Part shown: positions 52 through 63,179 of the stretch, piece by piece
How positions within the stretch are numbered: position 1 is the stretch's first letter
Layout of the letters: each line of letters starts with the position of its first letter
Source: Phyllobates terribilis
Taxonomy: Eukaryota
Length of the DNA stretch: 64,000 bases
Direction: 5' to 3'
Assembly (NCBI RefSeq): GCF_046119375.1
Contig: NW_027362763.1
Location: 72,168,001-72,232,000, forward strand
Position numbers and translations under genes: made by a program
The notes under the pieces: model-generated
Database searches by the model: none
The model's input: the letters and a program-made list of their open reading frames with translations, nothing else
What the model was told of the DNA's origin: nothing

Positions 52-125
52 TTCCCAGTAGACGGTGTCATCATAGCAGTTCTCATCAGGTGGTGGCCCC
101 CAGAATGGACATTTTAAGATGAAGC
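52..125 (-). CDS. RHAG: RHAG exon 9, copy 1 ([25 protein letters not shown])
   Basis: 74 bp, ttttag|GCT...GAA|gtaagt; matches the RhAG LILKLP.WG.P.D.NCYDD.VYW motif. Confidence 0.95.
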
Positions 126-538
126 CTAAAAAGTAGGGCACAAAACAACAGAGAAATGAAGGCCAGAAAAATAACTTTAGAAATATATTAAAAAAAAAAA
201 AAAACCTTCATGAACAAAGCTGGTTTTTGGACCTAAATTGATATTCCTAACTTAGACATTTATGGAATATTCACGAGATATGCCATAAATGTGTGCTGGA
301 TGCAAGGGAATGTGGTCTGCTGACTCCACTGTGCCAATTCCAGGCTATAACACTCTCCATGGAGATGTGACTGCACTCAGACCCCCACTGTGGAGAGAAC
401 CGAATACAGCATACTGGATCCATGGATCCTAAAATTATGCTCAATCTTAGACCTATAAATCCCATTATAAAAAAGCCCATTGAAAATGTCATCATATACA
501 GTAAGGGATCACTTAAGATGATGCTCTCTATTACACAC

Positions 539-612
539 CTGTGATGACGCCTCCAGCAATAGCGATAGCGAAGGTTGCGGCTAACGCAGCTCCTTGATAA
601 ACAGGATAATAG
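539..612 (-). CDS. RHAG: RHAG exon 8, copy 1 ([25 protein letters not shown])
   Basis: 74 bp, ttccag|CTA...CAG|gtgtgt; last TM helix, in frame with exons 7 and 9. Confidence 0.92.
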
Positions 613-773
613 CTGGAAAATGTAAAAAATATTGTTATTATGCAGCAATTGAGTTTTTTTGCATAAAAATTGATTGTATTGGACTGTTATATGTACAGGT
701 TTGACATCAGCCCCAGGGATACCAGGGTAGATTTCATGTCTGTTTGGGCTTGGAGATTTAATGGGAATCTTAA

Positions 774-1218
774 AGGGAATCTATCAGAAGGTTTTTGCTA
801 TTTCTTCTGAGAGCAGCATAATATAGAGCAAGAGATCCTGATTCCAGGGATATGTCACTTATTAGGCTGTTTGTTGTAGTTTCCATACAATTAGGGTTTT
901 ATCGCCAGGAAATTATCACTGACTAACTATGTCTCACATGCACAGCAGTCCAGCTAATATTTCTAACCCCGCCACCACCATTGATTGGCAGCTTGCTGAC
1001 AGTGTACACAAGAAGCTGCAAATCAGTGATGTGGGTGGGGTTATGCACAGTTCAACATTTTGAGCACTGTTAGATCTGCAGCAGAAAAAACAGGGACGCT
1101 ATCAAAACTGCACCAGGCAGCACGGTAAGTGACACATCACTGGAATCACAGTCTCTTGTCCTATATTATGCTGTTCTCAAATTTACGTACTATGCAAAAA
1201 TTCATTGACAGATTCCGT
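774..1218. mobile_element. T2-family (Kolobok-type) MITE; also 27578-28022 and 56166-56610
   Basis: TTAA on both sides; termini AGGGAATCTATCA / TGACAGATTCCGT. Confidence 0.85.
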
Positions 1219-1574
1219 TTAAACATAGAAAAACAAATATCTGTAGATAAATCTTTGTATTTAACCTGCTGTCAAATGCTTTACAAAAAAATCTGTCTCT
1301 ACTGCCACCTTTTATTGTTAGACTTAACAGAGAGCTAATTTGCATATCTTTTCCCATAATGCTCTCAAAATCAATTTTATCACCACAAGGAGAAGCAATA
1401 CCCCCTCCACCCCATGCCCGAGAGCTTAGATGGAGGCTTTATAATTAAGAGATATAAACATGAAGGTGAAATAAAGTAAATATCAAATAATTTATGATTA
1501 AAGAGTGATAAAAAGAAGAATAATTAATGATATATATTTACATTAATTTGGCCATACATGTGCTTGTTAATAAA

Positions 1575-2135
1575 AAAGAGCAAAGGGAGGAAAAAAATGC
1601 TAATGAGCCAAAACAATAATCGATGTAGAAAATGAACCTTTATTAAATAAAAACAATTATGGACTCGGCATGAGTCCAACTGTAAAAGAAAGACGTCACA
1701 TACGGGAGGTGAGTGTAGTAGGGCTGTAAACTAATTAACATAAGTAAAATAATCAGTGATAGTGAGTCAACTTACAAACCGCATACCCATAATTGTCCTC
1801 TTCTGCTGGAATGATGCCAGCACCGAAGTGCGTTTCGCTCATTGCCTTCATCTGGGGGTGGTGGTGCCACCCCAGCAAAAAGTTGTAGAAATATGAATCT
1901 CTGCTAATCAAACTTCTATATTTTGGAGTCATTTGGCCTTATATGCAATTTGTAGTCATGAGTCTAGTCCCAAACTGCCTTCAGCATCATGAGGCGAGAA
2001 GCATGGTGGCTACATGAACACAATTTGTCATGATGCCTTTAATTTAATGTTGTTCTCATTCTAAGAGCATGATTGTTTTTATTTAATAAAGGTTATTGAT
2101 TATTTTTTTGGGCTCATGAACATTTTTGCTCTTTT
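1575..2135 (-). mobile_element. Degenerate Penelope-like relic with hammerhead remnant (1821-1860), intron 7; repeated in copies 2 and 3
   Basis: Imperfect inverted repeats at about 1575-1660 and 2065-2135 flank ccccAGATGAaggc-aatga-gcGAAAC on the minus strand. Boundaries approximate. Confidence 0.5.
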
Positions 2136-2343
2136 GTGTTTCCCTTTTGGTTTGCCCTATACTTAGTCCTTTATTACATACCCTTAATTATATGTCACCA
2201 GACTTTCTACTATTTCTATAGTTTATTTTTTTTCCTAGAGAGCTTATTTGATTTATTCAGTGCACTTTAAATCCATGAGGAGATATGTCTGAATGCCGAA
2301 ATGATCAAAAATAATTTTTAGCATTGGAAGGAGAATTACTCAC

Positions 2344-2465
2344 TTGGGTTTTGCTCCGAGGGCTGTGGCCACAATGCCTGCGATCCCACCCATAATTCCT
2401 GGTAAACCGTGAAGATTGTGCACTCCGCATGTGTCCTGAACCCTGAGCTTGGAAGCAAAAATTGG
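2344..2465 (-). CDS. RHAG: RHAG exon 7, copy 1 ([41 protein letters not shown])
   Basis: 122 bp, ttttcag|CCA...AA|gtgagt; [13 protein letters not shown] motif with the second pore His. Confidence 0.97.
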
Positions 2466-2654
2466 CTGAAAGAGATAATGGGGATGAGAACAAAGTTAAT
2501 AAAGAGCAATTTTACGTAATGAAGTACTGAGCCAAATATTGTAGGGATCGGGGTAAAATTTGCATTCATAAAGTGAGCAACAAATGTCACCATTATTGTA
2601 CTTCTAAGAAACAAGCCTAAGACTTAATCAATGAAAATTTAGGTGTCAACTTAC

Positions 2655-2792
2655 AGTTAAGAACTTGAATCCCAGGGTAGAGATTATTCCTGCAATGAAC
2701 CCAATAATCATTGCGCCAAAGGGTCCAATGTTCATGTCAGCGCAGGTTCCTACCGCTACACCTCCGGCCAGAGTGGCATTCTGGATATGGAC
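2655..2792 (-). CDS. RHAG: RHAG exon 6, copy 1 ([46 protein letters not shown])
   Basis: 138 bp, tccag|GTC...ACT|gtaagt; [12 protein letters not shown] Rh signature. Confidence 0.97.
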
Positions 2793-3319
2793 CTGGATGG
2801 AACAAGTCAATGAGTGTGAGACCCCAGGCTTGCTGATTATTTAGATATCATCATGGTTGATATGTCACAATTTATTTTTCAAGGCACTAGTTTTCAAAAA
2901 TGTGAATTTAGTAATTATAGATGTCACTCAAGATTCCATTTTTAGAAGGATGGAATCCCATAACTTCTACTGCACAGTCAAACTTCTGTTGTGGCCAACA
3001 GGGAATAGGAAGCATTGGAGAGTCAAACTGGATCCACTATAGTCTACAGTTAAGGGGAGATTGAGCCAGTGTGAGATAGGAAGAGGTAGGGATATCCTGA
3101 TTTTTTTGGGATAAAAAAAAATTATGGGTAAAATTGCATAAAAAGAAAACATTCCCAGTACTGTAGAAAAACATATACATGTGAGAGCTTTTCCTAAATG
3201 TTTCAGATTACATCTCAGTCCTTACTCAGATTCCGTCCGAAACATGTAGGAAAAGCTCTACACACAACATAAGAGCGAGGGTGGCTTGTTTTTCTAAAAA
3301 AAAGTAGGGGGATCTCTGT

Positions 3320-3712
3320 GAACAGCATAATGTAAGGGCAGAGACCCTAATTCCAGTGATGTATCACTTGTTGGGTTGCTTGGTGTAGCTTTGGCAAAAT
3401 CACTGTTTTATCAGAAGGAGATTATCACCATATAGCTCTCAATATTCATGAGCTTTGAATAACCCCGCACCACCACTGATTGGTAGCTTTCTGCCTATGC
3501 ACAGTGTACACAGAAAGGTGCCAATCAGTCGTGAGGGCGGGGCTATACACAACTCAGAATTTAGAAAACTGGTAGATCTGCAGCAGAGGAAGCAGGAATT
3601 TTATCAAAACTGCAGCAAGCAGCCCCACAGGTGATACATCGCCATAATCAGGGTCTCTGCCACTACAACATAACCCTTTTTACAAAGCAAAAAACCTGCT
3701 TAAGGATTCATT
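3320..3712. mobile_element. T2-family MITE with decayed left end; also about 30124-30516 and 58712-59104
   Basis: Interior resembles 774-1218; right end agcaaaaaacctgcttaaggattcatt-TTAA. Left boundary approximate. Confidence 0.65.
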
Positions 3713-3800
3713 TTAAGTCTGTCTGACTAAGCTCTAAATATTATATATAAAATGTGTAGGGATCAGTAAGAATTGTGACATTATTTATGCAGTTTCTTAC

Positions 3801-3967
3801 CATATCAAACTTTCCTTTGTGTTCAACCAGACTGGAGAAGGCATAGGCAGTGAGCACACAGGCCGCCAGTGAGAAGTAGGTGTTAATAATGGCCATTTCC
3901 TGATCTGCTCCATGTTCGGCAATGGCAGAGTTGAAGCTTGGCCAAAACATCCACAGAAAGAGGGTTC
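3801..3967 (-). CDS. RHAG: RHAG exon 5, copy 1 ([56 protein letters not shown])
   Basis: 167 bp, ttttcag|GA...ATG|gtaaga. [13 protein letters not shown] and [13 protein letters not shown] match RhAG better than RhBG/RhCG. Confidence 0.97.
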
Positions 3968-4398
3968 CTGAAAATACATGAGTTTTCGACAACAATAACA
4001 TCTTTGTGAGTGAATTTCATTGCTTTATAAACGATATATTGATTGATTAATTTATACATTCATTCATTCTGTTAATTTATAAAAAAAAAACTGACAGCAG
4101 AGGAAAAAGAGTGTGCTGATCTTGTGGGGGAAGTGACCTTTTTCACAAATGTGGTTCTTTGAAGACATGGTTGAATATGAAAGGGACAATTCCAAAAAAA
4201 TGTGAGTGGTTACAATATAATTTACCCAGTGAAACTATAGAAATTGTTGTATTCTGATCTTACAGGAGAAAGTGACCTTTTCTGTAGAAAATAAGGTTAC
4301 ATATCACAGTGGCAATTTTGAGGCAGGAATACAATATGCTGAAGGCATAACATAAATAACTGTAGCTGCAACAGATGAGTTTACTGATCTTGCAGAAG

Positions 4399-4892
4399 AT
4401 GAACAGGGAAGAGCCACAAGGCTCAAAAAATGAGTGATCCAGCCTTTGTCAAGGGGTGTTCAAGGGGTGGAGACTATGTTCACACCCCTTGACAAAGGCT
4501 TGTTTGCCGAAACGCGCGTCGGGGCTGGCGCGCATGTGGCAGTGACTGAAGGGTAATCTATCCATTGACAGGTAGACTATGTTTCCGATATATGTCTGTT
4601 ATAAGTATAATATGTGAAGTAGTCATCAATTATGTACCTGTCATGGTAGTGATATCTAATGTGATTATATTTACCATACTTTAGATACTTACCCTTTGGA
4701 GTTTCAATTAACTTTTTCTCCCTTAATTACTGAGCGACTGTTTCCACTGTGAGCCCTATTTTAAATACACTCTGTGTTTTCTGTGTGTGTTCATACACTT
4801 ACTTTGTTATCATGTAATAAAATCTAGATATTTTGATACCATATTGTGCTGGATCACTCATTTTTTGAGCATTGTGGCTCTTCCCTGATCAT
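4399..4892 (+). mobile_element. Penelope-like pseudo-LTR insertion with inverted terminal copy; also about 31203-31696 and 59792-60285
   Basis: 45-bp inverted repeats 4399-4443 / 4848-4892 (2 mismatches), internal hammerhead motif, AATAAA at 4816-4821. Confidence 0.7.
4485..4524 (+). ncRNA. Minimal type I hammerhead ribozyme motif; also 31289-31328 and 59878-59917
   Basis: CCCC-UUGACAA-a-GGC(uuguuu)GCC-GAAA-CGCGCG-UC-GGGG. Stems I and II close, stem III is palindromic, GUC site at 4518-4520, core carries U3/A8 instead of C3/G8. Confidence 0.7.
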
Positions 4893-5710
4893 ATATCCCC
4901 TTATGATGATCCTCCTACAATTGAGGTCCTAGGTGGGCAGAGATGAAGTGCAACAAGTATGTTATAATAATATTGCCTAAATCTGTCAGATATCTCTCTC
5001 TGATCTTGCAGAAGGCAGTGGCCATTTCACTCACACAAGTACATGTGACAGTCACAAAATCAAGAAATGGGCAGGGAGGTATATTGTACCAAATTACTTC
5101 TCTATGGGAATTATTGTAGCAGCGGGAGATTAGTGATCTGATTTTATTGAAGGCAGTGACCAATTCACTCACGTGGTAATATGTGACAGGCTTAATATCA
5201 AAAAATGGTCAATGAAAGCATATACTCTATTCAATAAAACTATGGGAATTATTGAAGCAGCGGAAGGTTAATGTTCTGATCTTGTAGAAGGCAGTGACTG
5301 CTTTACTCATGTAGCCTTATGGGACAGGTATAGTATCAAGAAATCGCAGGGGAAACATATACTGTGTCCAATGAAACTATGGAAATTATTGTAGCATCTG
5401 GGGATTAATTTTCCACCCTTGCAGTAAACAAGTGATGGTAATTTACAAAGCTAAATACAGTTATGTGGCTTAGCAGAAAAGAGTGTGGTTTAGTGAGAAA
5501 GGGATGTGATTTTAATTTTTACTTTGCTCAGGCAAGATTATTAAACCTGCCTCCGTGACTTTTCTAATCTTTTGGTTATGTGACAGTTTCAAAAAGCAAG
5601 CAGAAATAAAATATGCTGTAGCCAATAAGAGCGTGAAAATTATTAAAGCAGCAGAAATGAGTATTCTGATAATATGGGCAGCAGTGACCATCGCACTCAT
5701 GTGATTGTGT

Positions 5711-6163
5711 ATTTAAAGACATACTGTTTGTATAGTTTTGAGAAGTAGATAGTGATCAAATATGCTATAGCTCACAAGACCATGGAAATTAATATAGCAG
5801 CAGGAGATGATTGTTCTGATTATATGGGAGGCAGTGACCAGTGATTTTATGGTTGTGTATTTAAAGACATACTGTTGGTAAAGTTTTGAGAAGTAGATAG
5901 TGATCACATATGCTATAGCCCATGAGACCATGGAAATTAATATAGCAGCAGGAGATGATTGTTCTGATTATATGGGAGGCAGTGACCAGTGATCTTGTGG
6001 TTGTGTATTTAAAGATATACTGTTGTTATAGTTTTGAGAAGTAGATAGTGATAAAAATATGTTATAGCCCATGAGACCATGTAAATTAATATAGCAGCAG
6101 GAGATGATTGTTCTGATCTTAAGGGAGGCAGTGACCACTCCAACCTTGTGGTTAGGTATTTAA
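5711..6163. repeat. About 148-bp tandem repeat in intron 4 (3 young units; degenerate units of about 139 bp extend back to about 4100); also 32515-32967 and 61104-61556
   Basis: atttaaag recurs at 5711, 5859, 6007, 6158; ctgat...gcagtgacc-like motifs recur from about 4116 to 5690. Confidence 0.9.
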
Positions 6164-6421
6164 AGGGTGCACAGCTTCAGGAGACCACAGCTTCAGGGGC
6201 ACAGCCCCTGCCTCCCAGCTTCCTACTTTTTGGGCTTCCAGTATGGTTGAGCCTCTGGCCTGAATTGTGCACTCTATTTAGCAGCGATTGAACCAAAATG
6301 AAATTGCTTGCAGTCCATTCTTGAAAATGGAGAGAAATTTTAATAAGAGATAAATTGCAAAGTTGCTTGGTTTTACAAGAAGGTTCAGATTTTACCCATT
6401 TATTAGGATAGGACAGCCCCT
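6164..6421. mobile_element. T2-type MITE inserted at a TTAA inside the intron-4 repeat; also 32968-33225 and 61557-61814
   Basis: TTAA at 6160-6163 and 6422-6425; right end GGACAGCCCCT; the repeat unit resumes after it (agagatactgtg...atatgctatagcc). Confidence 0.75.
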
Positions 6422-7640
6422 TTAAAGAGATACTGTGTGTACAACAGAAAGTGATAGAATATGCTATAGCCAATCAAACCAGGGAAAAAATGAATGATCT
6501 GATCTGAACTTTCTGGGGAAAATGACAGCATGTTGCTTGTTAGTAAGGACAGGGATGCAGGTGATGGGTTGGAACAGTTCAGAATGATTACTTTGGATCC
6601 CCCGGGTCCTTTCATCACACATTAACAAAATAACTTCACTTAATGACCATATGAACTTTAGATTTCACTAATAATTAAAATGTCGTGATTACCCTGACTC
6701 AGATTCATGTACCTGGGAAAGGGCTACAGCAAGACAAACAAAGGTGTACAAGAACGCTTGGCGAAACGTCAAGTATTAGATTGTGACCTTTTGTTTTACT
6801 TTCTGTGACTCTCCAGCCAAGCTGTCTTTCTAAAGAGCATGGTCTGGAGAGTTTTTATTAATTTTAAAGGAATATTCAATTGTCCTCAAATAAGGCGTAT
6901 TCATTGTAAAATAAAAAGTTATAGAATTTTCCAATATACTTTTTTAAAAAAAAAATTCCCATGGCATCGCCATGATGACAATATGTCAAATATGTCCATT
7001 TTTGTTGCTGATTTGTAATGATTATTTTGTTTTTACAAAGAGCAGTAAGAATTATTATTACAGCTGTTTTTCATTTTTTTTTTGTTACTTCAAAAGGAAA
7101 ACAAACCTATGACTTTTATTTTACCTCTACTATACAAGTATGCAAATTATATAAGAGATGTATTGGTACATAGAAATGTAAAGCTGCTGCCTGCCAAGCT
7201 ACAGGTTGTGAGTTTGAATCCTGTGGAAAACCTTCAAAAACAAATTGCAGAAACTGTTTAACTGCACGTACATTTCATTGCATGTCGTTTGTTCAATTTT
7301 CCAATAAATTGCATAGTAGAATGACTGGTGTCATCCAAAACTACAACTCGTCCTGCAAAAATATGCAAGCCTTCAATATGGCAATGTTGATGGAAAAACA
7401 AAGTTATGTATCTTGAAAGAAGGTTGGAAAAAAACAAAAGCACAAAAATGAAAAAATGCTCTAAACTAAGGGTTAAAATCTCGGTCATTAAAATCCTTTT
7501 TTAAAGTGTTTTTGCGCTTTTTTTTTTTTTTTCCTTCCTATCTTCCCATTGGCGTCCGACTATCTCTGACTACTTGGGTGGAGGGTGGACAGTGACTTAG
7601 TGACTTACAAAATAAAGATTTGTACATTTAGTTACTTTAC

Positions 7641-7788
7641 CAATCATTGCAAATAAATCAGAGTGATAAACAGAGCCTTCATGTTCATGTCCTTTTTTCA
7701 GTCCAGATCGATACAGTACAGCCGAAGCAGCCAGCCCGAAATAAGCTCCAAATGCATGGATGACCATAGATGCACCAATATCTGTCGC
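7641..7788 (-). CDS. RHAG: RHAG exon 4, copy 1 ([49 protein letters not shown])
   Basis: 148 bp, ttgcag|GCG...ATTG|gtaaag; [16 protein letters not shown] motif with the first pore His. Confidence 0.97.
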
Positions 7789-8242
7789 CTGCAAGATAAA
7801 AAGATTGGATGATGTTATATTTAAAGGGAATTTCCACTGAGACACATATCATTTATATACACATAATGCGCATTAAGAAGCAGAGTCACTATGAAAACAC
7901 CGTGCATTTCTGATCCTGAAATACAAATTGTGCTCTACTCAAGAGCTGCATTTACAATTCTGCAGTTTTCAGAACTGAAATCTCACAGCATTCCCTGTTG
8001 ACTACAGAGAGGATTATCTAGTGCATGGTTACATACATTAATCTATAAGACTATCGACATAAAAATATTATACAGGTTCAGACCATCATTGAATATTGAA
8101 AAATTATTTATAGAAAATGTTTAAAAATATAGAGAAAAATGTAGTCACAATGTCTACTATAGTATATTGATATAAATAGTACTGCCTCCAAATATCAGAA
8201 TGATGTATAGATAGCATTTTCTCACTGTCTTTCCAAATGAAT

Positions 8243-8671
8243 CATGTAGGCACAGATAGTACTGACTCCTTGTTTCTTTCTGTTTATCATGTAGGCACAG
8301 ATACAACTGAATTCATGTTTCTATTTTTATATAATGTAGGCACAGATAAAACTGACTTCTTTGCTTCTTTTTGTGTATTATGTAGGGAAAGATACAGCCA
8401 ACTCAGTACTGACTCCTTGTTTCTTTCTATTTATCATATAGGCACAGATACTACCAACTCCCTGTATCTTTATATATATCATGCAGGCACAGATTCAACT
8501 GACTCCCTGACCCTTTTTTCCATATCATGTAGGCACAGAGACAATTCACACCGTGTATATTTCTGTATATGATGTAGGCACAGACACAGCTGACTCTCTG
8601 TCTCTTTCTATATATCATGTAGGCACAGATATAACCAACTCCTTGTATCTTTTTTAATATCATGTAGGCAC
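8243..8671. repeat. About 45-bp minisatellite (core catgtaggcacagat), about 10 units, intron 3; also 35048-35476 and 63634-64000
   Basis: Core at 8243, 8288, 8333, 8379, 8435, 8480, 8526, 8571, 8616, 8661; the last unit is cut at catgtaggcac by the hAT end. Confidence 0.95.
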
Positions 8672-11634
8672 TACTGATGAGCGAGCACTAAAATGCTCGG
8701 GTACTCATTGTTCGTGTCGAGCAAATTGGAATACTCGGGTGCTCGACCCGAGCAACGAGCCCAATGTAAGTCTATGGGAAACTCGAGCATTTTTCAGGCG
8801 ACTCCCACCGGTGGTCTTCAGAGGGCCTAAAAATTGCCAAAATCGATGGGAACAGTGCTCAATTGACATGGGAACAGCATGGGGAAGACCCCTGGAAGCA
8901 TTTCGGACTCCCAGGTCACTGCTGTCAACAATGTTGTCAGAGGTATTACGCCACTTTTACGGACTCACAATAAACATGCAAATACAAAATCAAAATGGAT
9001 TTTCCGGGGAAATATGTTAAGGAACATCCTTTCCAGGGTATATAAGGCAAAATAAATATGCAAAAACAAAAATACTCCTCCACACCTTCGGCTATGTTCA
9101 CATGTAGCGTTTTTGATGCATTTTTGCACTTTTATATTGCTTTCAACCAAGACAAATGCATTCACTGGGAATTGTCAAGTGGGTCTCCCATACTGTTATT
9201 CCGTATGCAGTGACTGCAAGGGCTTCAAAAAATGTGGATGCAACCCAATACCACTTTGAAGAGACATAGAGGAGGGTCTCAGTAAAAAAATGTTCCCATT
9301 ATAAAGAAGCCAATCTCCTATAGTGGTAATGCCCATGCTGTGACTGCAATGGCTGCCAAAATTTAGGAAAAACCCCACTAACAATTTAAAGACACATAGA
9401 GCATGGCCAAAGTAACGAGTACGACATGTTCCCTTTAGAAAGGAGAGGGTCTGCTATTCAGTTATAGGGTATGCAGTGAAGCAACGGCTGCCAAAGATTT
9501 GGAGGAACTCCAATGCCCCGTGAAAGAGACGTAGAGGTCGGAGGACCTCCTGCAAAAATGCTCCCATTATTAGGAAGTGGGTCTCCCATACTGTTTGCCT
9601 ATGCAGTGAAGCAACGACTGCCAAAAATATGGAGGAACTCCAATGTCCCTTATAAGAGACATATAGGTCAGAGGGCCTCCTGCAAAAAATGCTCCCATTT
9701 TTAGGAAGTGTGTCTCCCATACTCTTTGCTTATGCAGTGAAGCAAGGGCTGACAAAAATTTGGAGGAACTCCAATACCCCTTGCAAGAAACATAGATATG
9801 TTGGTGATATGGTGGTGGAGGATGAGGATGCAGAGAAGGAGGAGGACAATAGCAAATAGACAAAATGAGGAAGAATATACCCATGTCTGGGTGTGAAGAC
9901 GTAGGTGCATGGGAATAGAGTTAGACCTCTCAAAAAAAAGACACTGTATTTCAGCTTATCTTACGCTGCTATCATTCAGTGGTGTTGAGAATTCTGGCCA
10001 AATCCAGCCCTTGTTAATTTTTATAAGAGCCAGCCTGTCAGCATTTTCAGTTGACAGGCAGATGCACCTATCAATTATAAATCCACCAGCGGCACTAAAA
10101 ACCCGCTCTGACCAAACGCTAGCGGAAGGGCAGGCCAGGACCTCCATGGCGTAGAGAGCCAGTTCATGCCACGTGTCCAGCATGGATACCCAATAATTAT
10201 AAGGCACAGAGGAATCACGGAGGATGTTGCACGGTAGGCAAAGTACTCCCTCACCATCTTCCGAACTTTTCCTTCCTTGGGAGAATATCCCGAGCCTCAG
10301 GGCCTGTGCGATGGGAGGGTCTGAGAAAACTGTCCCAGAACTTTGACAGTGTTCCCCTGCATTTTTCTGGATTGCATTTCTGTCTCTCTTGCCTGCTGTA
10401 CTCCTTGGTTTTCCAATGAACTGTGACCTCTGCCGCCAGCGTTTTCAGATGGGAATTTTTTTATTAATTCCGCAACAAGGGCCTTCTCATACTGCCCCAT
10501 TTTATTAGGCCTGTCCTACAAGGGAATAAGAGACAGAAAGTTCTCCTTGTAGCATGGGTATAGAATTGTCACCAACCGGTAATGACTGTCACCCAAAATT
10601 TGGACAAAGCAAGGGTCACGGGAAAGGCAGCGTGACATAAACTCAGCCTTGTGTGCCAGATTGCAAAGAGACAAGACTTCTCTGTCCTCACCAAGAGGAC
10701 AACTGGCCTTGCTCTCCTCCTAATCCTTCTCCTCTTCCTCCTCCTCCCTGTCCTCAGGCTATCCATGCTGAACAGATGTTATGACAGTTGTGCAGGTAGT
10801 ACGGTCTATAGCACATTGTCACCCAATCCTCGTTGGGATGAGATGAGGCTGGGCTGTGTGTAATCACCCTATATTGTTCCTTGCTCCAGCTCATCATGCT
10901 CTGCCTGCAATGCATCCTCTTAAATTGTGAGCAGAGAGCGTTTCAGAAGACAGAGAAATGGGATGGTGACGCTAATTATGAAGTCATCGCTGCACACCAT
11001 CTTGGTGGAGTCCTCAAAGCTTTGGAGGACGGTACAAATGTCTGACATCCATGTCCACTCTTGAGGTTTCATGTGTGGAGTCTGACCTGAACACCGACAG
11101 CCTTGTTGATGATGGTAGTCAACAACTGCCCTCTTCTGCTCACAAATCGTTCCCAACAACTGCAATTTAGAGTTCCAAAGCGTGGGAACAACGAAGATGC
11201 AAGGGCGCTGGAAGCTGTAGCTGACTTTCTAAGATGGGCACACAGGCGGCATACTTTGACAAGCAGATTGGACATATCCGGATAGGTTTTGAGAAACTGC
11301 TTAACCACGAGGTTAAGCACATGGGCCAGACATGGTACGTGTGTGAGCTCGCCGCACCTCAGAGCCGCCACCAGTTTCCCGCATTGTCACACATGACCAT
11401 GCCTGGCTGTGGGGTCAGAGGTGTCTGCCACAGATCTGCCTGCTCTTTCAGAGCTGTCCACAACTTTTCAGCGTTGTGCGGCTTGTTGCCTAAGCATATT
11501 AGCTTCAGCACAGCCTGTTGCCGCTTGGCCGAGGCAGTGCTGCAGTGCTTCCAGCTTGCGACTGATTTGGTCATTTCGGAGATGGAGGCTGAAGAGGAGG
11601 AGGAGGTGCAGGAGCTGTAGAATGTGGGGGCAAC
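8672..11634 (-). mobile_element. hAT-A: 3' part of a decayed Ac-group hAT transposon (TIR, subterminal repeats, C-terminal transposase); also 35477-38436
   Basis: TIR TACTGATGAGCGAGCA at 8672. Frameshifted fragments MCDNAG, THVPCLAHVLNLVV (CxxH) and LACPSASVWSERVFSAAG (catalytic E / dimerisation domain). Confidence 0.9.
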
Positions 11635-12050
11635 TGTTCGAATTTATGTTGTTCTACTATTGTTGTGGTTTGCTGGCTTCTAGTCTTTTCCTCTGGTGCT
11701 TGGTGTCTTGTTCACATGATCTCTTCACTCTTTATTATTCAGCACCTGTCTCCCATTCCCCGCTGGACATCAGTGTTGTTACGCTTGTGCTCTGGCTAAG
11801 TTGCCTTGTTTATTTTGTTTGTTCGTCTGTCTGCTACTATTTCTGTTAGGAGGTGTCCATTTTGCTCCCAGTCCCTAGTACTTGTAGGGATTCCTTCCCC
11901 ACATCTATAGGTCTCCGTACAGACTAGCTTAGGACTTTAGCAGGTCTGATCGCAGGATCAGGTTCCCCGTTACATCGTAGGGATCAAGCTGAGTTCTATC
12001 GTAGGGACAGCTCTCCTCTCTTTCCTTAGCTTTGGTAGCAGAACATAACA
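11635..12050. mobile_element. Solo-LTR-like segment (416 bp, TGTT...AACA) without TSD; also 38437-38852
   Basis: hAT homology stops at ggggcaac(t). The segment ends cataaca. Flanks gcaac / ctttc do not match. The second occurrence starts TATT rather than TGTT. Confidence 0.6.
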
Positions 12051-12346
12051 CTTTCAATGCTGGCAAACAAGAGCCATGCAGTACAGCATATTCAAAACAT
12101 TATTCCCATTATTGGGGAGTGGGTCTCCCATAGTCTTTGCCTATGCCTTCCAAGCAAAAGCTGCCAAAAATTAGGACGGAGGAACTTGCAATGCTGACCA
12201 CGGTCACCCTGGTGGTATAGTGGTGGTGGAGGCTGAGGATAAGGAGAAGAGCAAAATACAGCCGAAATGAGAAAGCGTATACCCATGTGTGGGTGTGAAG
12301 CGGTGCATGGGAATACACGTCCCGAAATAACACAGTGGATTTGACT

Positions 12347-15300: not shown

Positions 15301-15596
15301 CTTGACAGTGTGGAAGACAGACCGGAGGTGGTGGTGCCCAGGTAACTGGAAGTATTATCTGCTATATGATTAATAACCAGTTCACACTGATCAGTTCGCA
15401 ATACTGGTGTTGTAGTTTGCTTCCCTAGTAATTCGGTCAAGAAGTGGGAGCGAGAAGATGTGGCTGTTGGCTTTGGCACATTTTCACCTTGATCACGGCC
15501 CGGTCCTCTACACGCACCATCACCAGAACGTCCAGTTCCACGTCCCTTGCCACGCGCCTTGCCCATTGTAAATGAAGTAAAATAGCTTACACTCAC
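12347..15596 (-). pseudogene. hAT-B transposase pseudogene (BED zinc finger + DDE + dimerisation domain); also 39149-42398
   Basis: ORF fragments 15132-15596, 14806-15159, 14501-14905, 13930-14460, 13559-14206, 13328-13543 and 12347-12886 tile a transposase in changing frames. Confidence 0.9.
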
Positions 15597-15668
15597 ACTA
15601 CCAATGAAAAAAGGGAAATAAAAAGGAGATTAGTACCATGGAAGAGGAAAACCACTGTTCTATTTCTC

Positions 15669-53200: not shown

Positions 53201-53951
53201 AGGATTCCCTGTAATATAGGTATGACTAATTATGAAACATCAGGAATATAATTTTCCATTTATAAATGTTATACTGATGTATGGTCATGAGCGTGGAAAA
53301 TAGTAGTTATAGTAATAGTAATAGTTTTTGCTAAATACATGAAAAATATTTTCTTATTAATGTTTTAATATATCTTTATGGGATCAGATCTCCATTTTTC
53401 TAACAAAAAGCTCTAAATTTTCAGCAAAGTCATTGAGTTAAGTGATTTAATTCCTTATGTCTGCAGTCACCAATAGAGGGAGCTCCAGAGTTTACTGCAT
53501 ACTGTGTACATATTTATCAATAACTGCTATGCTTCCCCTAGTGGTGACCCAAAGCAGCAAAAATGTTGTCAATCATTTCAATTTCTATATGGAGATTTTT
53601 AGCTCTGTAACAGAAGAACTGAGCTCCAAATGACCAAAAAAAGTAATGTTTTAAAATGAATCACAGAATGTTGAACCTAAAGTTGAAGATTTACTGTATT
53701 TAAAAGATTTATACACAATGGATGAATCCCCTTACGCTCCGGAAATAATCTAAAGTAGTTGTCAATGTAGAGTTCAATGGTATCTATTATAAAGGATCAT
53801 GAAGCATGGTACCTATAATAGTAAATGGTGCCTTTTTAGGTCATGCCTACCATATAACAATCATTTCCCTCGCATAAAGTCATATATATTGGGTATAAAG
53901 TTTATGGTATACTTTCCATACATTTTTTTGAGAAAAGTGACTGTGGCGACT

Positions 53952-54023
53952 TTATGCGTCTACACGGATTTTTCCATGTTCTCCTTGGTAATGGTGTTCT
54001 GCTTCTTCTTCTTCGAGGGGAAC
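53952..54023 (-). CDS. RHAG: RHAG exon 10, copy 3
   Basis: Identical to 25364-25435. Confidence 0.88.
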   Translation of the reverse strand, partial: VPLEEEEAEHHYQGEHGKIRVDA

Positions 54024-57000
54024 CTAAAAAAATCATATGGTTCCAATTAAACACATATGCAAAGACTAAGGTGTCCAAATTATATTTCTTTTATTTCAAT
54101 TATTTGGAGTAGTTTGCTCCTTTTTCATATGCTTATCTGAACTGCAGCTAATTTTACAATCATTTGTAACATTTTCAGTCTAATCTGTTTTCATTCATAT
54201 CAGGATATTTTTTGATATGTGAAGTGGTCGGGTATGTGGGAGAGGGGGTAAGGGAAGACGATCGAGTAGAGAGGGGGAAAATTGAGAGATAAGTAGTCAA
54301 GACAGTAGGGAAAAGGGGAAAAATAAAGGAGGGTATGGAGAGGAAAGGTTTAGACCAAGGCGAGAAAGGGATGAAAACATAGAATATGGATTAGTAAGGA
54401 CAGTAAAAAATGTTAGAAGAGAGGTTAGAGGAAAAAGAAGAGCTAAAAGGGAGAGAGGAGAGGGAATATGGGGAGAGAACGGGTTGAAAAGGGGAGGGGA
54501 AATGAAAGAGGAAAAAGAGTTGGGAAAAGGTAAAAACAGGAGAAAAAGGTGATAGGGACAGAAAAGAGAAGAGGAAGAAGAGTGATGGGAAGTTGGAAGG
54601 AAGAAGAGAAGTAAAAGAGATGAAGAGAGGAGATGAGTGTTGTGAGGTGGAGAGTGAAAGCGGTAAAGGGGAGGTTAGAAAAAGAGAGAAGAATTAAAAG
54701 GGAGAAAGGAGAGGTAAGAGGGTGAAAAAGTGAGATGAGCGGTGGGAGCGGAAAAGAAGAAAGAAAGATTAGAATACAGGTAAAAGCTGAAGAGAGGAGG
54801 TAAAAATAGCTGATTAGAGGGAAGAGGGAGAGAAAAGAGATTAAAAATGGATGGAGCTGTAAGTGGGCGAGAGAAAACGAGGTGGTATTTAGAGTGAGGG
54901 ATTGGAAAAAGATAAGGAGGAGTGGGGAGCTGATGGAAAGGAAGAACTCCATAGGAGAGAAGAGCTAAAGAAAGGAAAAAGAGAGGAGAGGTGAAAAAAG
55001 AGATGAGAGGTATGAAAGGAAGTGTAGAGAAGAAAGAGTTGGAGATGAGAAAGAAAAGGAGGAAAATTAGGGGAAGTTTGAAAGAGAAAGGAATGAAATG
55101 GAAAGGGGGAGGGAACAGAAGAAAAGATGTGAAAGGTAGAAAGAAAGATGAAAATAGTAAAAAGGAAACAGGAAAATAAGTGAAAAAAGAAAACGTGGTA
55201 GAGGAACAGGAAGGGGAGGAAAATAAAATAAGGAAGAGACAAGACACTAGTGTATATGTATGTGCTGTCTTTTAATTCACAGGAAAGTTGCTGTATTTTT
55301 TAGGAATGTAATTCTCTTAATTTACAATATCAGATTTCTGAACCAATATATTGTCAGAACAGTCTGGGAGCTGAGGAAACAGTGAGTGAGATAGTGATAG
55401 TGAAGCCTTGCTGTAATGCCTTTTAATAGGGTGACTGTACTTACTTCCCAGTAGACGGTGTCATCATAGCAGTTCTCATCAGGTGGTGGCCCCCAGAATG
55501 GACATTTTAAGATGAAGCCTAAAAAGTAGGGCACAAAACAACAGAGAAATGAAGGCCAGAAAAATAACTTTAGAAATATATTAAAAAAAAAAAAAACCTT
55601 CATGAACAAAGCTGGTTTTTGGACCTAAATTGATATTCCTAACTTAGACATTTATGGAATATTCACGAGATATGCCATAAATGTGTGCTGGATGCAAGGG
55701 AATGTGGTCTGCTGACTCCACTGTGCCAATTCCAGGCTATAACACTCTCCATGGAGATGTGACTGCACTCAGACCCCCACTGTGGAGAGAACCGAATACT
55801 GCATACTGGATCCATGGATCCTAAAATTATGCTCAATCTTAGACCTATAAATCCCATTATAAAAAAGCCCATTGAAAATGTCATCATATACAGTAAGGGA
55901 TCACTTAAGATGATGCTCTCTATTACACACCTGTGATGACGCCTCCAACAATAGCGATAGCGAAGGTTGCGGCTAACGCAGCTCCTTGATAAACAGGATA
56001 ATAGCTGGAAAATGTAAAAAATATTGTTATTATGCAGCAATTGAGTTTTTTTGCATAAAAATTGATTGTATTGGACTGTTATATGTACAGGTTTGACATC
56101 AGCCCCAGGGAAACCAGGGTAGATTTCATGTCTGTTTGGGCTTGGAGATTTAATGGGAATCTTAAAGGGAATCTATCAGAAGGTTTTTGCTATTTCTTCT
56201 GAGAGCAGCATAATATAGAGCAAGATATCCTGATTCCAGGGATATGTTACTTATTAGGCTGTTTGTTGTAGTTTCCATACAATTAGGGTTTTATCGCCAG
56301 GAAATTATCACTGACTAACTATGTCTCACATGCACAGCAGTCCAGCTAATATTTCTAACCCCGCCCCCACCATTGATTGGCAGCTTGCTGACAGTGTACA
56401 CAAGAAGCTGCCAATCAGTGATGTGGGTGGGGTTATGCACAGTTCAACATTTTGAGCACTGTTAGATCTGCAGCAGAAAAAACAGGGACGCTATCAAAAC
56501 TGCACCAGGCAGCACGGTAAGTGACACATCACTGGAATCAGAGTCTCTTGTCCTATATTATGCTGTTCTCAAATTAACGTACTATGCAAAAATTCATTGA
56601 CAGATTCCGTTTAAACATAGAAAAACAAATATCTGTAGATAAATCTTTGTATTTAACCTGCTGTCAAATGCTTTACAAAAAAATCTGTCTCTACTGCCAC
56701 CTTTTATTGTTAGACTTAACAGAGAGCTAATTTGCATATCTTTTCCCATAATGCTCTCAAAATCAATTTTATCACCACAAGGAGAAGCAATACCCCCTCC
56801 ACCCCATGCCCGAGAGCTTAGATGGAGGCTTTATAATTAAGAGATATAAACATGAAGGTGAAATAAAGTAAATATCAAATAATTTATGATTAAAGAGTGA
56901 TAAAAAGAAGAATAATTAATGATATATATTTACATTAATTTGGCCATACATGTGCTTGTTAATAAAAAAGAGCAAAGGGAGGAAAAAAATGCTAATGAGC

Positions 57001-60000
57001 CAAAACAATAATCGATGTAGAAAATGAACCTTTATTAAATAAAAACAATTATGGACTCGGCATGAGTCCAACTGTAAAAGAAAGACGTCACATACGGGAG
57101 GTGAGTGTAGTAGGGCTGTAAACTAATTAACATAAGTAAAATAATCAGTGATAGTGAGTCAACTTACAAACCGCATACCCATAATTGTCCTCTTCTGCTG
57201 GAATGATGCCAGCACCGAAGTGCGTTTCGCTCATTGCCTTCATCTGGGGGTGGTGGTGCCACCCCAGCAAAAAGTTGTAGAAATATGAATCTCTGCTAAT
57301 CAAACTTCTACATTTTGGAGTCATTTGGCCTTATATGCAATTTGTAGTCATGAGTCTAGTCCCAAACTGCCTTCAGCATCATGAGGCGAGAAGCATGGTG
57401 GCTACATGAACACAATTTGTCATGATGCCTTTAATTTAATGTTGTTCTCATTCTAAGAGCATGATTGTTTTTATTTAACAAAGGTTATTGATTATTTTTT
57501 TGGGCTCATGAACATTTTTGCTCTTTTGTGTTTCCCTTTTGGTTTGCCCTATACTTAGTCCTTTATTACATACCCTTAATTATATGTCACCAGACTTTCT
57601 ACTATTTCTATAGTTTATTTTTTTTCCTAGAGAGCTTATTTGATTTATTCAGTGCACTTTAAATCCATGAGGAGATATGTCTGAATGCCGAAATGATCAA
57701 AAATAATTTTTAGCATTGGAAGGAGAATTACTCACTTGGGTTTTGCTCCGAGGGCTGTGGCCACAATGCCTGCGATCCCACCCATAATTCCTGGTAAACC
57801 GTGAAGATTGTGCACTCCGCATGTGTCCTGAACCCTGAGCTTGGAAGCAAAAATTGGCTGAAAGAGATAATGGGGATGAGAACAAAGTTAATAAAGAGCA
57901 ATTTTACATAATGAAGTACTGAGCCAAATATTGTAGGGATCGGGGTAAAATTTGCATTCATAAAGTGAGCAACAAATGTCACCATTATTGTACTTCTAAG
58001 AAACAAGCCTAAGACTTAATCAATGAAAATTTAGGTGTCAACTTACAGTTAAGAACTTGAATCCCAGGGTAGAGATTATTCCTGCAATGAACCCAATAAT
58101 CATTGCGCCAAAGGGTCCAATGTTCATGTCAGCGCAGGTTCCTACCGCTACACCTCCGGCCAGAGTGGCATTCTGGATATGGACCTGGATGGAACAAGTC
58201 AATGAGTGTGAGACCCCAGGCTTGCTGATTATTTAGATATCATCATGGTTGATATGTCACAATTTATTTTTCAAGGCACTAGTTTTCAAAAATGTGAATT
58301 TAGTAAGTATAGATGTCACTCAAGATTCCATTTTTAGAAGGATGGAATCCCATAACTTCTACTGCACAGTCAAACTTCTGTTGTGGCCAACAGGGAATAG
58401 GAAGCATTGGAGAGTCAAACTGGATCCACTATAGTCTACAGTTAAGGGGAGATTGAGCCAGTGTGAGATAGGAAGAGGTAGGGATATCCTGATTTTTTTG
58501 GGATAAAAAAAAATTATGGGTAAAATTGCATAAAAAGAAAACATTCCCAGTACTGTAGAAAAACATATACATGTGAGAGCTTTTCCTAAATGTTTCAGAT
58601 TACATCTCAGTCCTTACTCAGATTCCGTCCGAAACATGTAGGAAAAGCTCTACACACAACATAAGAGCGAGGGTGGCTTGTTTTTCTAAAAAAAAGTAGG
58701 GGGATCTCTGTGAACAGCATAATGTAAGGGCAGAGACCCTAATTCCAGTGATGTATCACTTGTTGGGTTGCTTGGTGTAGCTTTGGCAAAATCACTGTTT
58801 TATCAGCAGGAGATTATCACCATATAGCTCTCAATATTCATGAGCTTTGAATAACCCCGCACCACCACTGATTGGTAGCTTTCTGCCTATGCACAGTGTA
58901 CACAGAAAGGTGCCAATCAGTCATGAGGGCGGGGCTATACACAACTCAGAATTTAGAAAACTGGTAGATCTGCAGCAGAGGAAGCAGGAATTTTATCAAA
59001 ACTGCAGCAAGCAGCCCCACAGGTGATACATCGCCATAATCAGGGTCTCTGCCACTACAACATAACCCTTTTTACAAAGCAAAAAACCTGCTTAAGGATT
59101 CATTTTAAGTCTGTCTGACTAAGATCTAAATATTATATATAAAATGTGTAGGGATCAGTAAGAATTGTGACATTATTTATGCAGTTTCTTACCATATCAA
59201 ACTTTCCTTTGTGTTCAACCAGACTGGAGAAGGCATAGGCAGTGAGCACACAGGCCGCCAGTGAGAAGTAGGTGTTAATAATGGCCATTTCCTGATCTGC
59301 TCCATGTTCGGCAATGGCAGAGTTGAAGCTTGGCCAAAACATCCACAGAAAGAGGGTTCCTGAAAATACATGAGTTTTCGACAACAATAACATCTTTGTG
59401 AGTGAATTTCATTGCTTTATAAACGATATATTGATTGATTAATTTATACATTCATTCATTCTGTTAATTTATAAAAAAAAAAACTGACAGCAGAGGAAAA
59501 AGAGTGTGCTGATCTTGTGGGGGAAGTGACCTTTTTCACAAATGTGGTTCTTTGAAGACATGGTTGAATATGAAAGGGACAATTCCAAAAAAATGTGAGT
59601 GGTTACAATATAATTTACCCAGTGAAACTATAGAAATTGTTGTATTCTGATCTTACAGGAGAAAGTGACCTTTTCTGTAGAAAATAAGGTTACATATCAC
59701 AGTGGCAATTTTGAGGCAGGAATACAATATGCTGAAGGCATAACATAAATAACTGTAGCTGCAACAGATGAGTTTACTGATCTTGCAGAAGATGAACAGG
59801 GAAGAGCCACAAGGCTCAAAAAATGAGTGATCCAGCCTTTGTCAAGGGGTGTTCAAGGGGTGGAGACTATGTTCACACCCCTTGACAAAGGCTTGTTTGC
59901 CGAAACGCGCGTCGGGGCTGGCGCGCATGTGGCAGTGACTGAAGGGTAATCTATCCATTGACAGGTAGACTATGTTTCCGATATATGTCTGTTATAAGTA

Positions 60001-63000
60001 TAATATGTGAAGTAGTCATCAATTATGTACCTGTCATGGTAGTGATATCTAATGTGATTATATTTACCATACTTTAGATACTTACCCTTTGGAGTTTCAA
60101 TTAACTTTTTCTCCCTTAATTACTGAGCGACTGTTTCCATTGTGAGCCCTATTTTAAATACACTCTGTGTTTTCTGTGTGTGTTCATACACTTACTTTGT
60201 TATCATGTAATAAAATCTAGATATTTTGATACCATATTGTGCTGGATCACTCATTTTTTGAGCATTGTGGCTCTTCCCTGATCATATATCCCCTTATGAT
60301 GATCCTCCTACAATTATGGTCCTAGGTGGGCAGAGATGAAGTGCAACAAGTATGTTATAATAATATTGCCTAAATCTGTCAGATATCTCTCTCTGATCTT
60401 GCAGAAGGCAGTGGCCATTTCACTCACACAACTACATGTGACAGTCACAAAATCAAGAAATGGGCAGGGAGGTATACTGTACCAAATTACTTCTCTATGG
60501 GAATTATTGTAGCAGCGGGAGATTAGTGATCTGATTTTATTGAAGGCAGTGACCAATTCACTCACGTGGTAATATGTGACAGGCTTAATATCAAAAAATG
60601 GTCAATGAAAGGATATACTCTATTCAATAAAACTATGGGAATTATTGAAGCAGCGGAAGGTTAATGTTCTGATCTTGTAGAAGGCAGTGACTGCTTTACT
60701 CATGTAGCCTTATGGGACAGGTATAGTATCAAGAAATTGCAGGGGAAACATATACTGTGTCCAATGAAACTATGGAAATTATTGTAGCATCTGGGGATTA
60801 ATTTTCCACCCTTGCAGTAAACAAGTGATGGTAATTTACAAAGCTAAATACAGTTATGTGGCTTAGCAGAAAAGAGTGTGGTTTAGTGAGAAAGGGATGT
60901 GATTTTAATTTTTACTTTGCTCAGGCAAGATTATTAAACCTGCCTCCGTGACTTTTCTAATCTTTTGGTTATGTGACAGTTTCAAAAAGCAAGCAGAAAT
61001 AAAATATGCTGTAGCCAATAAGAGCGTGAAAATTATTAAAGCAGCAGAAATGAGTATTCTGATAATATGGGCAGCAGTGACCATCGCACTCATGTGATTG
61101 TGTATTTAAAGACATACTGTTTGTATAGTTTTGAGAAGTAGATAGTGATCAAATATGCTATAGCTCACAAGACCATGGAAATTAATATAGCAGCAGGAGA
61201 TGATTGTTCTGATTATATGGGAGGCAGTGACCAGTGATTTTATGGTTGTGTATTTAAAGACATACTGTTGGTAAAGTTTTGAGAAGTAGATAGTGATCAC
61301 ATATGCTATAGCCCATGAGACCATGGAAATTAATATAGCAGCAGGAGATGATTGTTCTGATTATATGGGAGGCAGTGACCAGTGATCTTGTGGTTGTGTA
61401 TTTAAAGATATACTGTTGTTATAGTTTTGAGAAGTAGATAGTGATAAAAATATGTTATAGCCCATGAGACCATGTAAATTAATATAGCAGCAGGAGATGA
61501 TTGTTCTGATCTTAAGGGAGGCAGTGACCACTCCAACCTTGTGGTTAGGTATTTAAAGGGTGCACAGCTTCAGGAGACCACAGCTTCAGGGGCACAGCCC
61601 CTGCCTCCCAGCTTCCTACTTTTTGGGCTTCCAGTATGGTTGAGCCTCTGGCCTGAATTGTGCACTCTATTTAGCAGCGATTGAACCAAAATGAAATTGC
61701 TTGCAGTCCATTCTTGAAAATGGAGAGAAATTTTAATAAGAGATAAATTGCAAAGTTGCTTGGTTTTACAAGAAGGTTCAGATTTTACCCATTTATTAGG
61801 ATAGGACAGCCCCTTTAAAGAGATACTGTGTGTACAACAGAAAGTGATAGAATATGCTATAGCCAATCAAACCAGGGAAAAAATGAATGATCTGATCTGA
61901 ACTTTCTGGGGAAAATGACAGCATGTTGCTTGTTAGTAAGGACAGGGATGCAGGTGATGGGTTGGAACAGTTCAGAATGATTACTTTGGATCCCCCGGGT
62001 CCTTTCATCACACATTAACAAAATAACTTCACTTAATGACCAGTTGAACTTTAGATTTCACTAATAATTAAAATGTCGTGATTACCCTGACTCAGATTCA
62101 TGTACCTGGGAAAGGGCTACAGCAAGACAAACAAAGGTGTACAAGAACGCTTGGCGAAACGTCAAGTATTAGATTGTGACCTTTTGTTTTACTTTCTGTG
62201 ACTCTCCAGCCAAGCTGTCTTTCTAAAGAGCATGGTCTGGAGAGTTTTTATTAATTTTAAAGGAATATTCAATTGTCCTCAAATAAGGCGTATTCATTGT
62301 AAAATAAAAAGTTATAGAATTTTCCAATATACTTTTAAAAAAAAAAAAATTCCCATGGCATCGCCATGATGACAATATGTCAAATATGTCCATTTTTGTT
62401 GCTGATTTGTAATGATTATTTTGTTTTTACAAAGAGCAGTAAGAATTATTATTACAGCTGTTTTTCATTTTTTTTTTGTTACTTCAAAAGGAAAACAAAC
62501 CTATGACTTTTATTTTACCTCTACTATACAAGTATGCAAATTATATAAGAGATGTATTGGTACATAGAAATGTAAAGCTGCTGCCTGCCAAGCTACAGGT
62601 TGTGAGTTTGAATCCTGTGGAAAACCTTCAAAAACAAATTGCAGAAACTGTTTAACTGCACGTACATTTCATTGCATGTCGTTTGTTCAATTTTCCAATA
62701 AATTGCATAGTAGAATGACTGGTGTCATCCAAAACTACAACTCGTCCTGCAAAAAAATACAAGCCTTCAATATGGCAATGTTGATGGAAAAACAAAGTTA
62801 TGTATCTTGAAAGAAGGTTGGAAAAAAACAAAAGCACAAAAATGAAAAAATGCTCTAAACTAAGGGTTAAAATCTCGGTCATTAAAATCCTTTTTTAAAG
62901 TGTTTTTGCGCTTTTTTTTTTTTCCTTCCTATCTTCCCATTGGCGTCCGACTATCTCTGACTACTTGGGTGGAGGGTGGACAGTGACTTAGTGACTTACA

Positions 63001-63179
63001 AAATAAAGATTTGTACATTTAGTTACTTTACCAATCATTGCAAATAAATCAGAGTGATAAACAGAGCCTTCATGTTCATGTCCTTTTTTCAGTCCAGATC
63101 GATACAGTACAGCCGAAGCAGCCAGCCCGAAATAAGCTCCAAATGCATGGATGACCATAGATGCACCAATATCTGTCGC
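53952..63179 (-). CDS. RHAG: RHAG copy 3: exons 4-10, frame intact; may be the copy joined to exons 1-3 beyond the window
   Basis: All seven exons present. The window ends about 60 bp before the position where the hAT-A junction would be, so the 5' context cannot be seen. Confidence 0.9.
55445..55518 (-). CDS. RHAG: RHAG exon 9, copy 3
   Basis: Identical to 52-125. Confidence 0.95.
55931..56004 (-). CDS. RHAG: RHAG exon 8, copy 3 (Val variant)
   Basis: Identical to 27343-27416. Confidence 0.92.
57736..57857 (-). CDS. RHAG: RHAG exon 7, copy 3
   Basis: Identical to 2344-2465. Confidence 0.97.
58047..58184 (-). CDS. RHAG: RHAG exon 6, copy 3
   Basis: Identical to 2655-2792. Confidence 0.97.
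59193..59359 (-). CDS. RHAG: RHAG exon 5, copy 3
   Basis: Identical to 3801-3967. Confidence 0.97.
63032..63179 (-). CDS. RHAG: RHAG exon 4, copy 3
   Basis: Identical to 7641-7788. Confidence 0.97.

Follow-up and report, generated by a model that had tools for sequence, protein, structure and literature searches.

The 64,000-nucleotide stretch of the Phyllobates terribilis genome analyzed here (contig NW_027362763.1, positions 72,168,001 to 72,232,000; hereafter the window) lies entirely within a direct tandem repeat, of which it contains about 2.3 units (26.8 and 28.6 kb), and harbors three head-to-tail exon sets from the 3' half of RHAG, the gene encoding RhAG, the Rh-family ammonium transporter that serves as an ammonia channel of red cells. 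The array was read from the assembly sequence alone (GCA_046119375.1), which has no N base in these 64 kb. In a self-comparison of the window, positions 3-15846 match 26808-42655 at 99.6%, 15697-35414 match 44286-64000 at 99.8% and 3-8609 match 55396-64000 at 99.5%, with a unit identity of 99.5-99.9% when introns and spacers are included. Both ends of the window fall inside the array, with neither array end visible, and the difference in unit length (26.8 vs. 28.6 kb) has two sources in the second unit, namely an insertion of 1.63 kb and an altered number of 149-bp satellite repeats. The array is a young tandem partial-gene duplication comprising the exon 4-10 half of RHAG, as exemplified by head-to-tail, multi-kilobase direct repeats of high identity that include non-coding sequence, the features of a tandem segmental duplication. 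The initial annotation of this DNA had proposed a recent tandem expansion of the 3' half of RHAG in three head-to-tail exon sets, and the self-comparison and the exon models bear out both proposals, the units differing by just 0.1-0.4%. The exon sets, named C, B and A in the order of transcription on the minus strand, and the spacers between them are located as follows.

53952-63179, minus strand: copy C, exons 4-10; its translation equals residues 167-430 of XP_073530132.1
63179-63032, 59359-59193 and 58184-58047, minus strand: copy C, exons 4, 5 and 6
57857-57736, 56004-55931, 55518-55445 and 54023-53952, minus strand: copy C, exons 7, 8, 9 and 10 with stop
25364-34593, minus strand: copy B, exons 4-10, 5'-truncated; RefSeq model XP_073529040.1, 257 aa, ATG at 34572
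34593-34446, 30771-30605 and 29596-29459, minus strand: copy B, exons 4, 5 and 6
29269-29148, 27416-27343, 26930-26857 and 25435-25364, minus strand: copy B, exons 7, 8, 9 and 10 with stop
52-7788, minus strand: copy A, exons 4-9, the most divergent copy, with Ala for Val in exon 8; corresponds to XP_073529038.1
7788-7641, 3967-3801 and 2792-2655, minus strand: copy A, exons 4, 5 and 6
2465-2344, 612-539 and 125-52, minus strand: copy A, exons 7, 8 and 9
34594-53951, minus strand: spacer C-B, 19.4 kb; 3' flank of exon 10 and intron-3-derived sequence, with satellites, hAT remnants and a copy-specific Tc1/mariner element
7789-25363, minus strand: spacer B-A, 17.6 kb; about 99.9% homologous to spacer C-B, without the Tc1 element and with another number of 149-bp repeats

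On six-frame translation of the window, Rh-type motifs appeared on the minus strand only, one set per unit. Exons 4-9 of each unit measure 148, 167, 138, 122, 74 and 74 nt on that strand, adding up to 723 nt with phase 0 at both start and end. All exon boundaries carry AG acceptors and GT donors and the three sets are free of stops, in agreement with the canonical splice sites and open frames described before. Exon 10, located by tblastn with the last 30 residues of close frog RhAG proteins, comprises 23 codons plus the stop and lies about 1.4 kb 3' of exon 9 (25435-25364 and 54023-53952); that of copy A falls off the window, about 1.45 kb past its left end. Between the limits originally given, 52 (the end of copy A exon 9) and 63179 (the start of copy C exon 4), all three of the annotated exon 4-10 sets do contain exons 4-9, but exon 10 is found within the window for only two of them. 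The 257-aa open reading frame starting with MVIHAFG was reproduced exactly. Recognizing that the introns are all retained with their AG/GT sites and that the copies are adjacent and in register, we ruled out a processed pseudogene (retrocopy).

Sequence similarity identifies the gene as RhAG and not as RhBG, RhCG or Rh30. Exons 4-7 each scored 34-44 bits against the Pfam family Ammonium_transp (PF00909; cut-off 23.2) and jointly span positions 149-328 of the 399-position profile. Exon 5 alone scored 92 bits with human RhAG vs. 74 with RhCG and 43 with RhCE, and the product compared with solved structures scored 394 bits with human RhAG, 318 with RhCG and 132 with RhCE, which upholds the RHAG identity initially assigned. 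A profile search of a large protein database returned RhAG names throughout its top matches, the closest being RhAG of Ranitomeya imitator (96.3% over 241 residues) and of Dendrobates tinctorius (94.6%).

The 90% cluster of the Ranitomeya protein also holds P. terribilis RhAG (XP_073530132.1, 430 aa), together with two P. terribilis proteins of 257 aa named 'ammonium transporter Rh type A-like' (XP_073529040.1 and XP_073529038.1), all three being placed on one 932.5-Mb sequence. Copies B and C both translate into XP_073529040.1, with zero differences in 257 residues, and match the full-length XP_073530132.1 exactly from residue 167 to residue 430; Ala204 of copy A (Val to Ala, exon 8) is the sole variant distinguishing XP_073529038.1. 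The truncated copies are already in RefSeq as protein models, without an account of array structure, origin or truncation. As to the initial remark that no intragenic RHAG array was known, we found no paper describing one in amphibians or mentioning GCA_046119375, but RefSeq already models the copies as RhAG-like. No 257-aa RhAG-like protein from other annotated dendrobatids was present in the same 90% cluster. Of separate note is a truncated 192-aa 'Rh type A-like' model from Latimeria chalumnae (XP_006014259.2) that covers approximately exons 5-8; either a fragmentary assembly or a further partial copy may account for it.

The repeat unit is devoid of the first three coding exons, as the initial annotation had claimed, and this was evidenced by: 1) a motif scan of the 17.6-19.4 kb spacers, which found no exons 1-3; 2) tblastn of the window with 16 long Rh proteins, in which residues 1 to ~165 never matched at better than E = 0.2 and exons 4-7 and 9 matched at E 1e-7 to 1e-24; 3) an N-terminal profile hidden Markov model (HMM) run with filters off against all reading frames of at least 12 codons, in which the best match (E 0.076) was confined to unit 2, with a C-terminal HMM as control recovering exons 4-9 in all three units; and 4) tblastn with six frog RhAGs that are 92-96% identical to the window product, whose first 170 residues matched at a best E of 0.05. 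The marginal match at 42669-42556 (E 0.05-0.08), confined to unit 2 and lying at the edge of a Tc1 insertion, was dismissed as chance. A plus-strand Rh-like match at about 20716-21024 (E 0.2 by tblastn, E 35 by HMM) was likewise judged to be chance.

The 257-aa product aligns with residues 172-406 of the 409 residues of human RhAG and keeps the WPSFNS motif as well as the twin pore histidines, with the histidine of IHAFG equivalent to His175 and that of NLHG to His334 of human RhAG. As a Kyte-Doolittle count recovered just 8 of the 12 helices of the full protein, helices were counted by structure prediction instead. The AlphaFold2 model, built on a 42-sequence alignment, has seven helices with a mean predicted local distance difference test score (pLDDT) of 74.9 and a first helix at 55-60; this low confidence in the first helix would be consistent with the loss of N-terminal packing partners. 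In Foldseek, the model was matched first with human RhAG, of which it covers about one half (TMq 0.71, TMt 0.48), and then with RhCG, Nitrosomonas Rh50 and AmtB. Both the alignment and the seven-helix prediction concur with the earlier proposal that exons 4-10 encode approximately transmembrane segments 6 to 12, including both pore histidines and WPSFNS. In Amt/Rh proteins, the two halves of a single subunit jointly form the pore, and the 257-aa fragment therefore cannot be a channel by itself. Neither copy A nor copy B alone encodes a complete subunit of 11-12 helices, and copy C does so only if joined to exons 1-3.

To decide which copy belongs to the full-length gene, we turned to the gene spans in GCA_046119375.1. 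XP_073529040.1 has a single gene position with a span of 9,209 bp, which is exactly the distance from the copy B ATG (34572) to its stop (25364); the corresponding distance in copy C would be 9,207 bp. The span of the XP_073529038.1 gene (9,218 bp) fits copy A with a stop about 1,450 bp to the left of the window. With copy B, and not copy C, accounting for the 9,209-bp span, the full-length model XP_073530132.1 is left to copy C; the gene of this model extends over 108,682 bp and, like copy C, encodes Val. A gene of 108.7 kb needs no extra units, since the single-copy RHAG of D. tinctorius spans 90,484 bp. By these comparisons, copy C probably supplies the 3' half of the normal RHAG gene, exons 1-3 being expected as far as ~100 kb past the right window end, and B and A presumably lie downstream of the copy C stop codon. 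The gene spans thereby speak against the intragenic array of the initial annotation and suggest that one copy completes the normal gene, with the other two trailing downstream. The total copy number is most likely three because the 90% cluster holds no further protein models; there may be unannotated or pseudogene copies beyond the window.

With respect to the history of the array, the divergence between units falls into two classes. Private substitutions over the 8.6 kb common to the three units number 26 in A, 6 in B and 7 in C, and the gene bodies differ by 0.41% between A and B, 0.39% between A and C and 0.13% between B and C; the two spacers differ from each other by 0.10% (A-B vs. spacers, Fisher p = 3.5e-6). 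The outlier among the copies also changes along the unit, with private substitutions in A, B and C of 26, 6 and 4 from exon 9 to intron 4, where A stands apart, and of 0, 0 and 3 in the 1.2 kb upstream of exon 4, where C stands apart (switch between body and upstream region, Fisher p = 0.006). The switch maps to the following interval.

34170-34635, unstranded: outlier-switch interval in copy B (7365-7830 in copy A coordinates), spanning exon 4; putative breakpoint of unequal crossover or conversion

As judged by these substitutions, copy B is chimeric, its upstream side being sister to A and its body sister to C. A chimeric middle copy and spacers as young as the B-C pair, the marks of unequal crossing-over (nonallelic homologous recombination), are both present, with few upstream sites to read them from. 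We surmise that the chimeric copy B and the sister spacers are due to unequal crossing-over between misaligned copies of an older two-copy array. The distribution of copy-A-private substitutions is uneven, being densest near exons 8-9 (window 1-2000 vs. 26806-28800), with 7 in the first kb, and A-B differences number 14 in the first 2 kb vs. ~2-5 per 2 kb in the rest of the body; this dense patch could reflect nearness to an old breakpoint or a patch spared by conversion.

Putting these data together, we favor, with a probability of about 0.72, a young tandem duplication that proceeded in two steps, leaving copy C as part of the full gene and copies B and A as inert fragments. A segment of ~27 kb, comprising RHAG exons 4-10 and the 3' UTR, part of intron 3 and part of the 3' flank, would have been duplicated first, giving two copies, ancestral to C and A, that are now ~0.4% apart. 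Unequal crossing-over at or near exon 4 would then have generated the chimeric copy B and the second spacer, each ~0.1% from its partner. Copy C, as the most upstream copy, would be spliced to exons 1-3 beyond the right end of the window to yield the normal 430-aa RhAG. Copies B and A would lie downstream of the stop codon and 3' UTR, lacking their own promoter, first exons and natural start codon, and are most likely silent, neutral fragments, the 257-aa proteins probably being annotation models that begin at the first in-frame methionine of exon 4. Within this scenario, we infer the crossover mechanism, the lack of expression, the dates and the choice of the full-gene copy. The two events may be dated to roughly 2 and 0.5 million years ago if one assumes, as we did, a neutral rate of ~1e-9 per site per year; the split between P. 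terribilis and P. bicolor is said to have occurred ~2 million years ago (PMC12208295).

Several points weigh against the two-step scenario. The assignment of copy C to the full gene comes from gene-span arithmetic, as the window covers neither the array ends nor exons 1-3, and the RefSeq models, having been built on the same assembly, do not support it independently. The upstream side of the chimeric pattern consists of only three substitutions, and a long gene-conversion tract may give the same pattern, as may an out-of-register join of haplotypes by the assembler. Lastly, the silence of B and A is an assumption, as they may be transcribed from a promoter that a transposon carries in the spacers, or by read-through from RHAG.

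Among the alternatives to two successive events, an assembly artefact fares best, albeit as an unlikely one. In such a case, the true genome would carry two tandem copies or fewer, the third copy would stem from an out-of-register haplotype join, the ~0.1% divergence would be heterozygosity and the Tc1 element would be heterozygous. Such a join predicts exactly a chimeric middle copy flanked by two near-identical spacers, 0.1% is plausible as heterozygosity, and the genome, at 12.6 Gb and ~88% repeats, is known to be hard to assemble (PMC12208295). The assembly in that genome paper is another, fragmented one (GCA_045270155.1), and RHAG goes unmentioned there. However, the window is gap-free, the three distinct body sequences demand at least one true duplication, and A and C differ at about every 250 bp, with no long identical stretch at the switch to mislead long accurate reads. 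In favor of a real array is also the Tc1 insertion, which is copy-specific with a clean TA duplication, the other spacer showing the empty site. Differences between copies comprise 23 transitions vs. 41 transversions (Ts/Tv 0.56), and the old repeats of the same window (satellites, Tc1 inverted repeats and dispersed repeats) have transition to transversion counts of 86:112 and 51:72, which are not significantly different. The transversion-rich spectrum is accordingly likely a feature of the sequence context, since the old repeats show it too, and this match argues against an artefact; on the same grounds, the spectrum no longer counts as a sign of sequencing or consensus error in the inter-copy differences. 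Across all repeat classes, the Ts/Tv of ~0.56-0.77 is unusually low for a vertebrate, with an AT-rich, CpG-poor context or alignment noise as possible reasons. Two haplotypes of a single-copy locus are ruled out, all three copies being distinct.

An alternative that concerns function, and that the initial annotation had raised, is that the copies are expressed and matter, the 257-aa half-channel joining or poisoning Rh trimers, or read-through transcripts with exon 9 spliced to the next exon 4 encoding concatemers. We deem this very unlikely. It is true that the frames are intact, that a splice from exon 9 to the next exon 4 stays in frame (723 nt, phase 0), that the seven helices, predicted at moderate confidence, match the C-terminal half of human RhAG (pLDDT 74.9, TMq 0.71) with both pore histidines retained, and that RefSeq models the copies as protein-coding. 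However, intact frames are expected by chance at a divergence of 0.1-0.4%, as evidenced by a single A-B coding difference vs. 2.97 expected at the intronic rate (P = 0.20), and by the finding that only 3.8% of random single-base changes create a stop. Open frames as a sign of selection were rejected, because intactness is expected at such youth; the initial annotation was correct that every copy is still in frame, but this is uninformative on selection. In addition, we saw no sign of a promoter, first exon or signal, the context of the exon-4 ATG is weak at -3 (TCTATGG), the first helix is predicted at low confidence, and a fragment alone cannot form a channel. RNA-seq support for the models is indistinguishable from reads of the identical exons in the real gene. 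Should a half-RhAG or a concatemer be transcribed all the same, whether through read-through or from a transposon promoter in a spacer, it might be incorporated into Rh trimers and act as a natural dominant modifier of the channel, altering how red cells or skin transport ammonia or CO2, an outcome we consider marginally more improbable still.

Just as improbable as expressed fragments is the use of B and A as alternative 3' cassettes, in which transcription reads past the polyadenylation site of copy C and exon 3 is spliced to exon 4 of B or A. A full-length RhAG with its C-terminal half taken from another copy (Val or Ala) would result. Exon 4 is in phase 0 in each copy with identical acceptor sequences, and the copies are co-oriented and downstream of the promoter, which would permit such splicing. 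However, it requires read-through over 19-47 kb and the skipping of nearer, identical acceptors, and would yield products no more than one residue apart, without a clear functional gain. We regard copies B and A most likely as inert by-products of the two-step duplication.

In the spacers, we found no gene other than hAT and Tc1 transposase remnants, and searches for tRNA genes and Rfam families yielded none. The elements recognized there and the tandem-repeat arrays of the unit are the following.

42656-44285, minus strand: Tc1/mariner transposon, in spacer C-B only, with ~277-bp terminal inverted repeats, CAGTACAG termini and a TA target-site duplication
43778-42927: 283-aa Tc1 transposase open reading frame, matching HTH_Tnp_Tc3_2, HTH_32 and DDE_3
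12347-12886 (minus strand) and 21946-22440 (plus strand), with counterparts in the second unit: open reading frames with the hAT C-terminal dimerisation domain (E ~1e-9 to 1e-10), regarded as hAT remnants
15626-16759, 18125-18752, 22575-23275, 9470-9796, 8241-8671 and 5102-6165, with counterparts: tandem-repeat arrays

The inverted repeats of the Tc1 element are 94.6% alike, its TA duplications lie at 42654-42655 and 44286-44287, and the empty site in spacer B-A is at about 15846. The element landed in the 149-bp satellite after the spacers had separated, which suggests recent Tc1 activity in the genome. The six short tandem-repeat arrays per unit have periods of 149, 108, 132, 131, 45 and 138-148 bp; one array is situated in intron 4 and another directly upstream of exon 4, and the number of 149-bp repeats differs between the spacers. 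Two spacer segments ~2.4 kb apart, 10396-11613 and 12784-14038, are 62-83% alike, and may represent an older internal duplication or two transposon copies.

The triplication of alpha-globin and the red/green opsin arrays are textbook products of unequal crossing-over, and the RHAG array resembles them in its pattern of three copies with a chimeric middle copy and sister spacers, as left by a two-copy repeat that misaligns and recombines; in contrast to those complete and expressed genes, the RHAG unit is without promoter and exons 1-3. Primate RHD and RHCE, duplicated genes of the Rh30 branch, offer a likeness in the recent duplication of an Rh-family member with exchange between copies, but they are whole, expressed and in opposite orientation, whereas the P. 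terribilis copies are partial, head-to-tail and derived from RHAG. The array does not differ in kind from young partial gene duplicates, in which the duplicated span is shorter than the gene and the copy is without its 5' end. Among young human duplicates, 83% are complete, with a median span of 36 kb (PMC4546093). Truncation is to be expected here, given a span of ~27 kb vs. a gene of ~100 kb. The event is of a well-known kind, a partial-gene tandem duplication, real but ordinary.

Its value resides in providing a clean and datable case of array growth, in which duplication would have been followed by unequal crossing-over with a chimeric middle copy, and in showing how a giant gene in a 12.6-Gb genome is partially copied when the duplicated span falls far below gene length. 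It also carries a warning for annotation, as the pair of 257-aa "RhAG-like" proteins probably represents truncated duplicates rather than additional members of the Rh family, and short reads and RNA-seq reads will multi-map across RHAG exons 4-10. As for Rh channel biology, it would be affected only if the fragments prove to be expressed.

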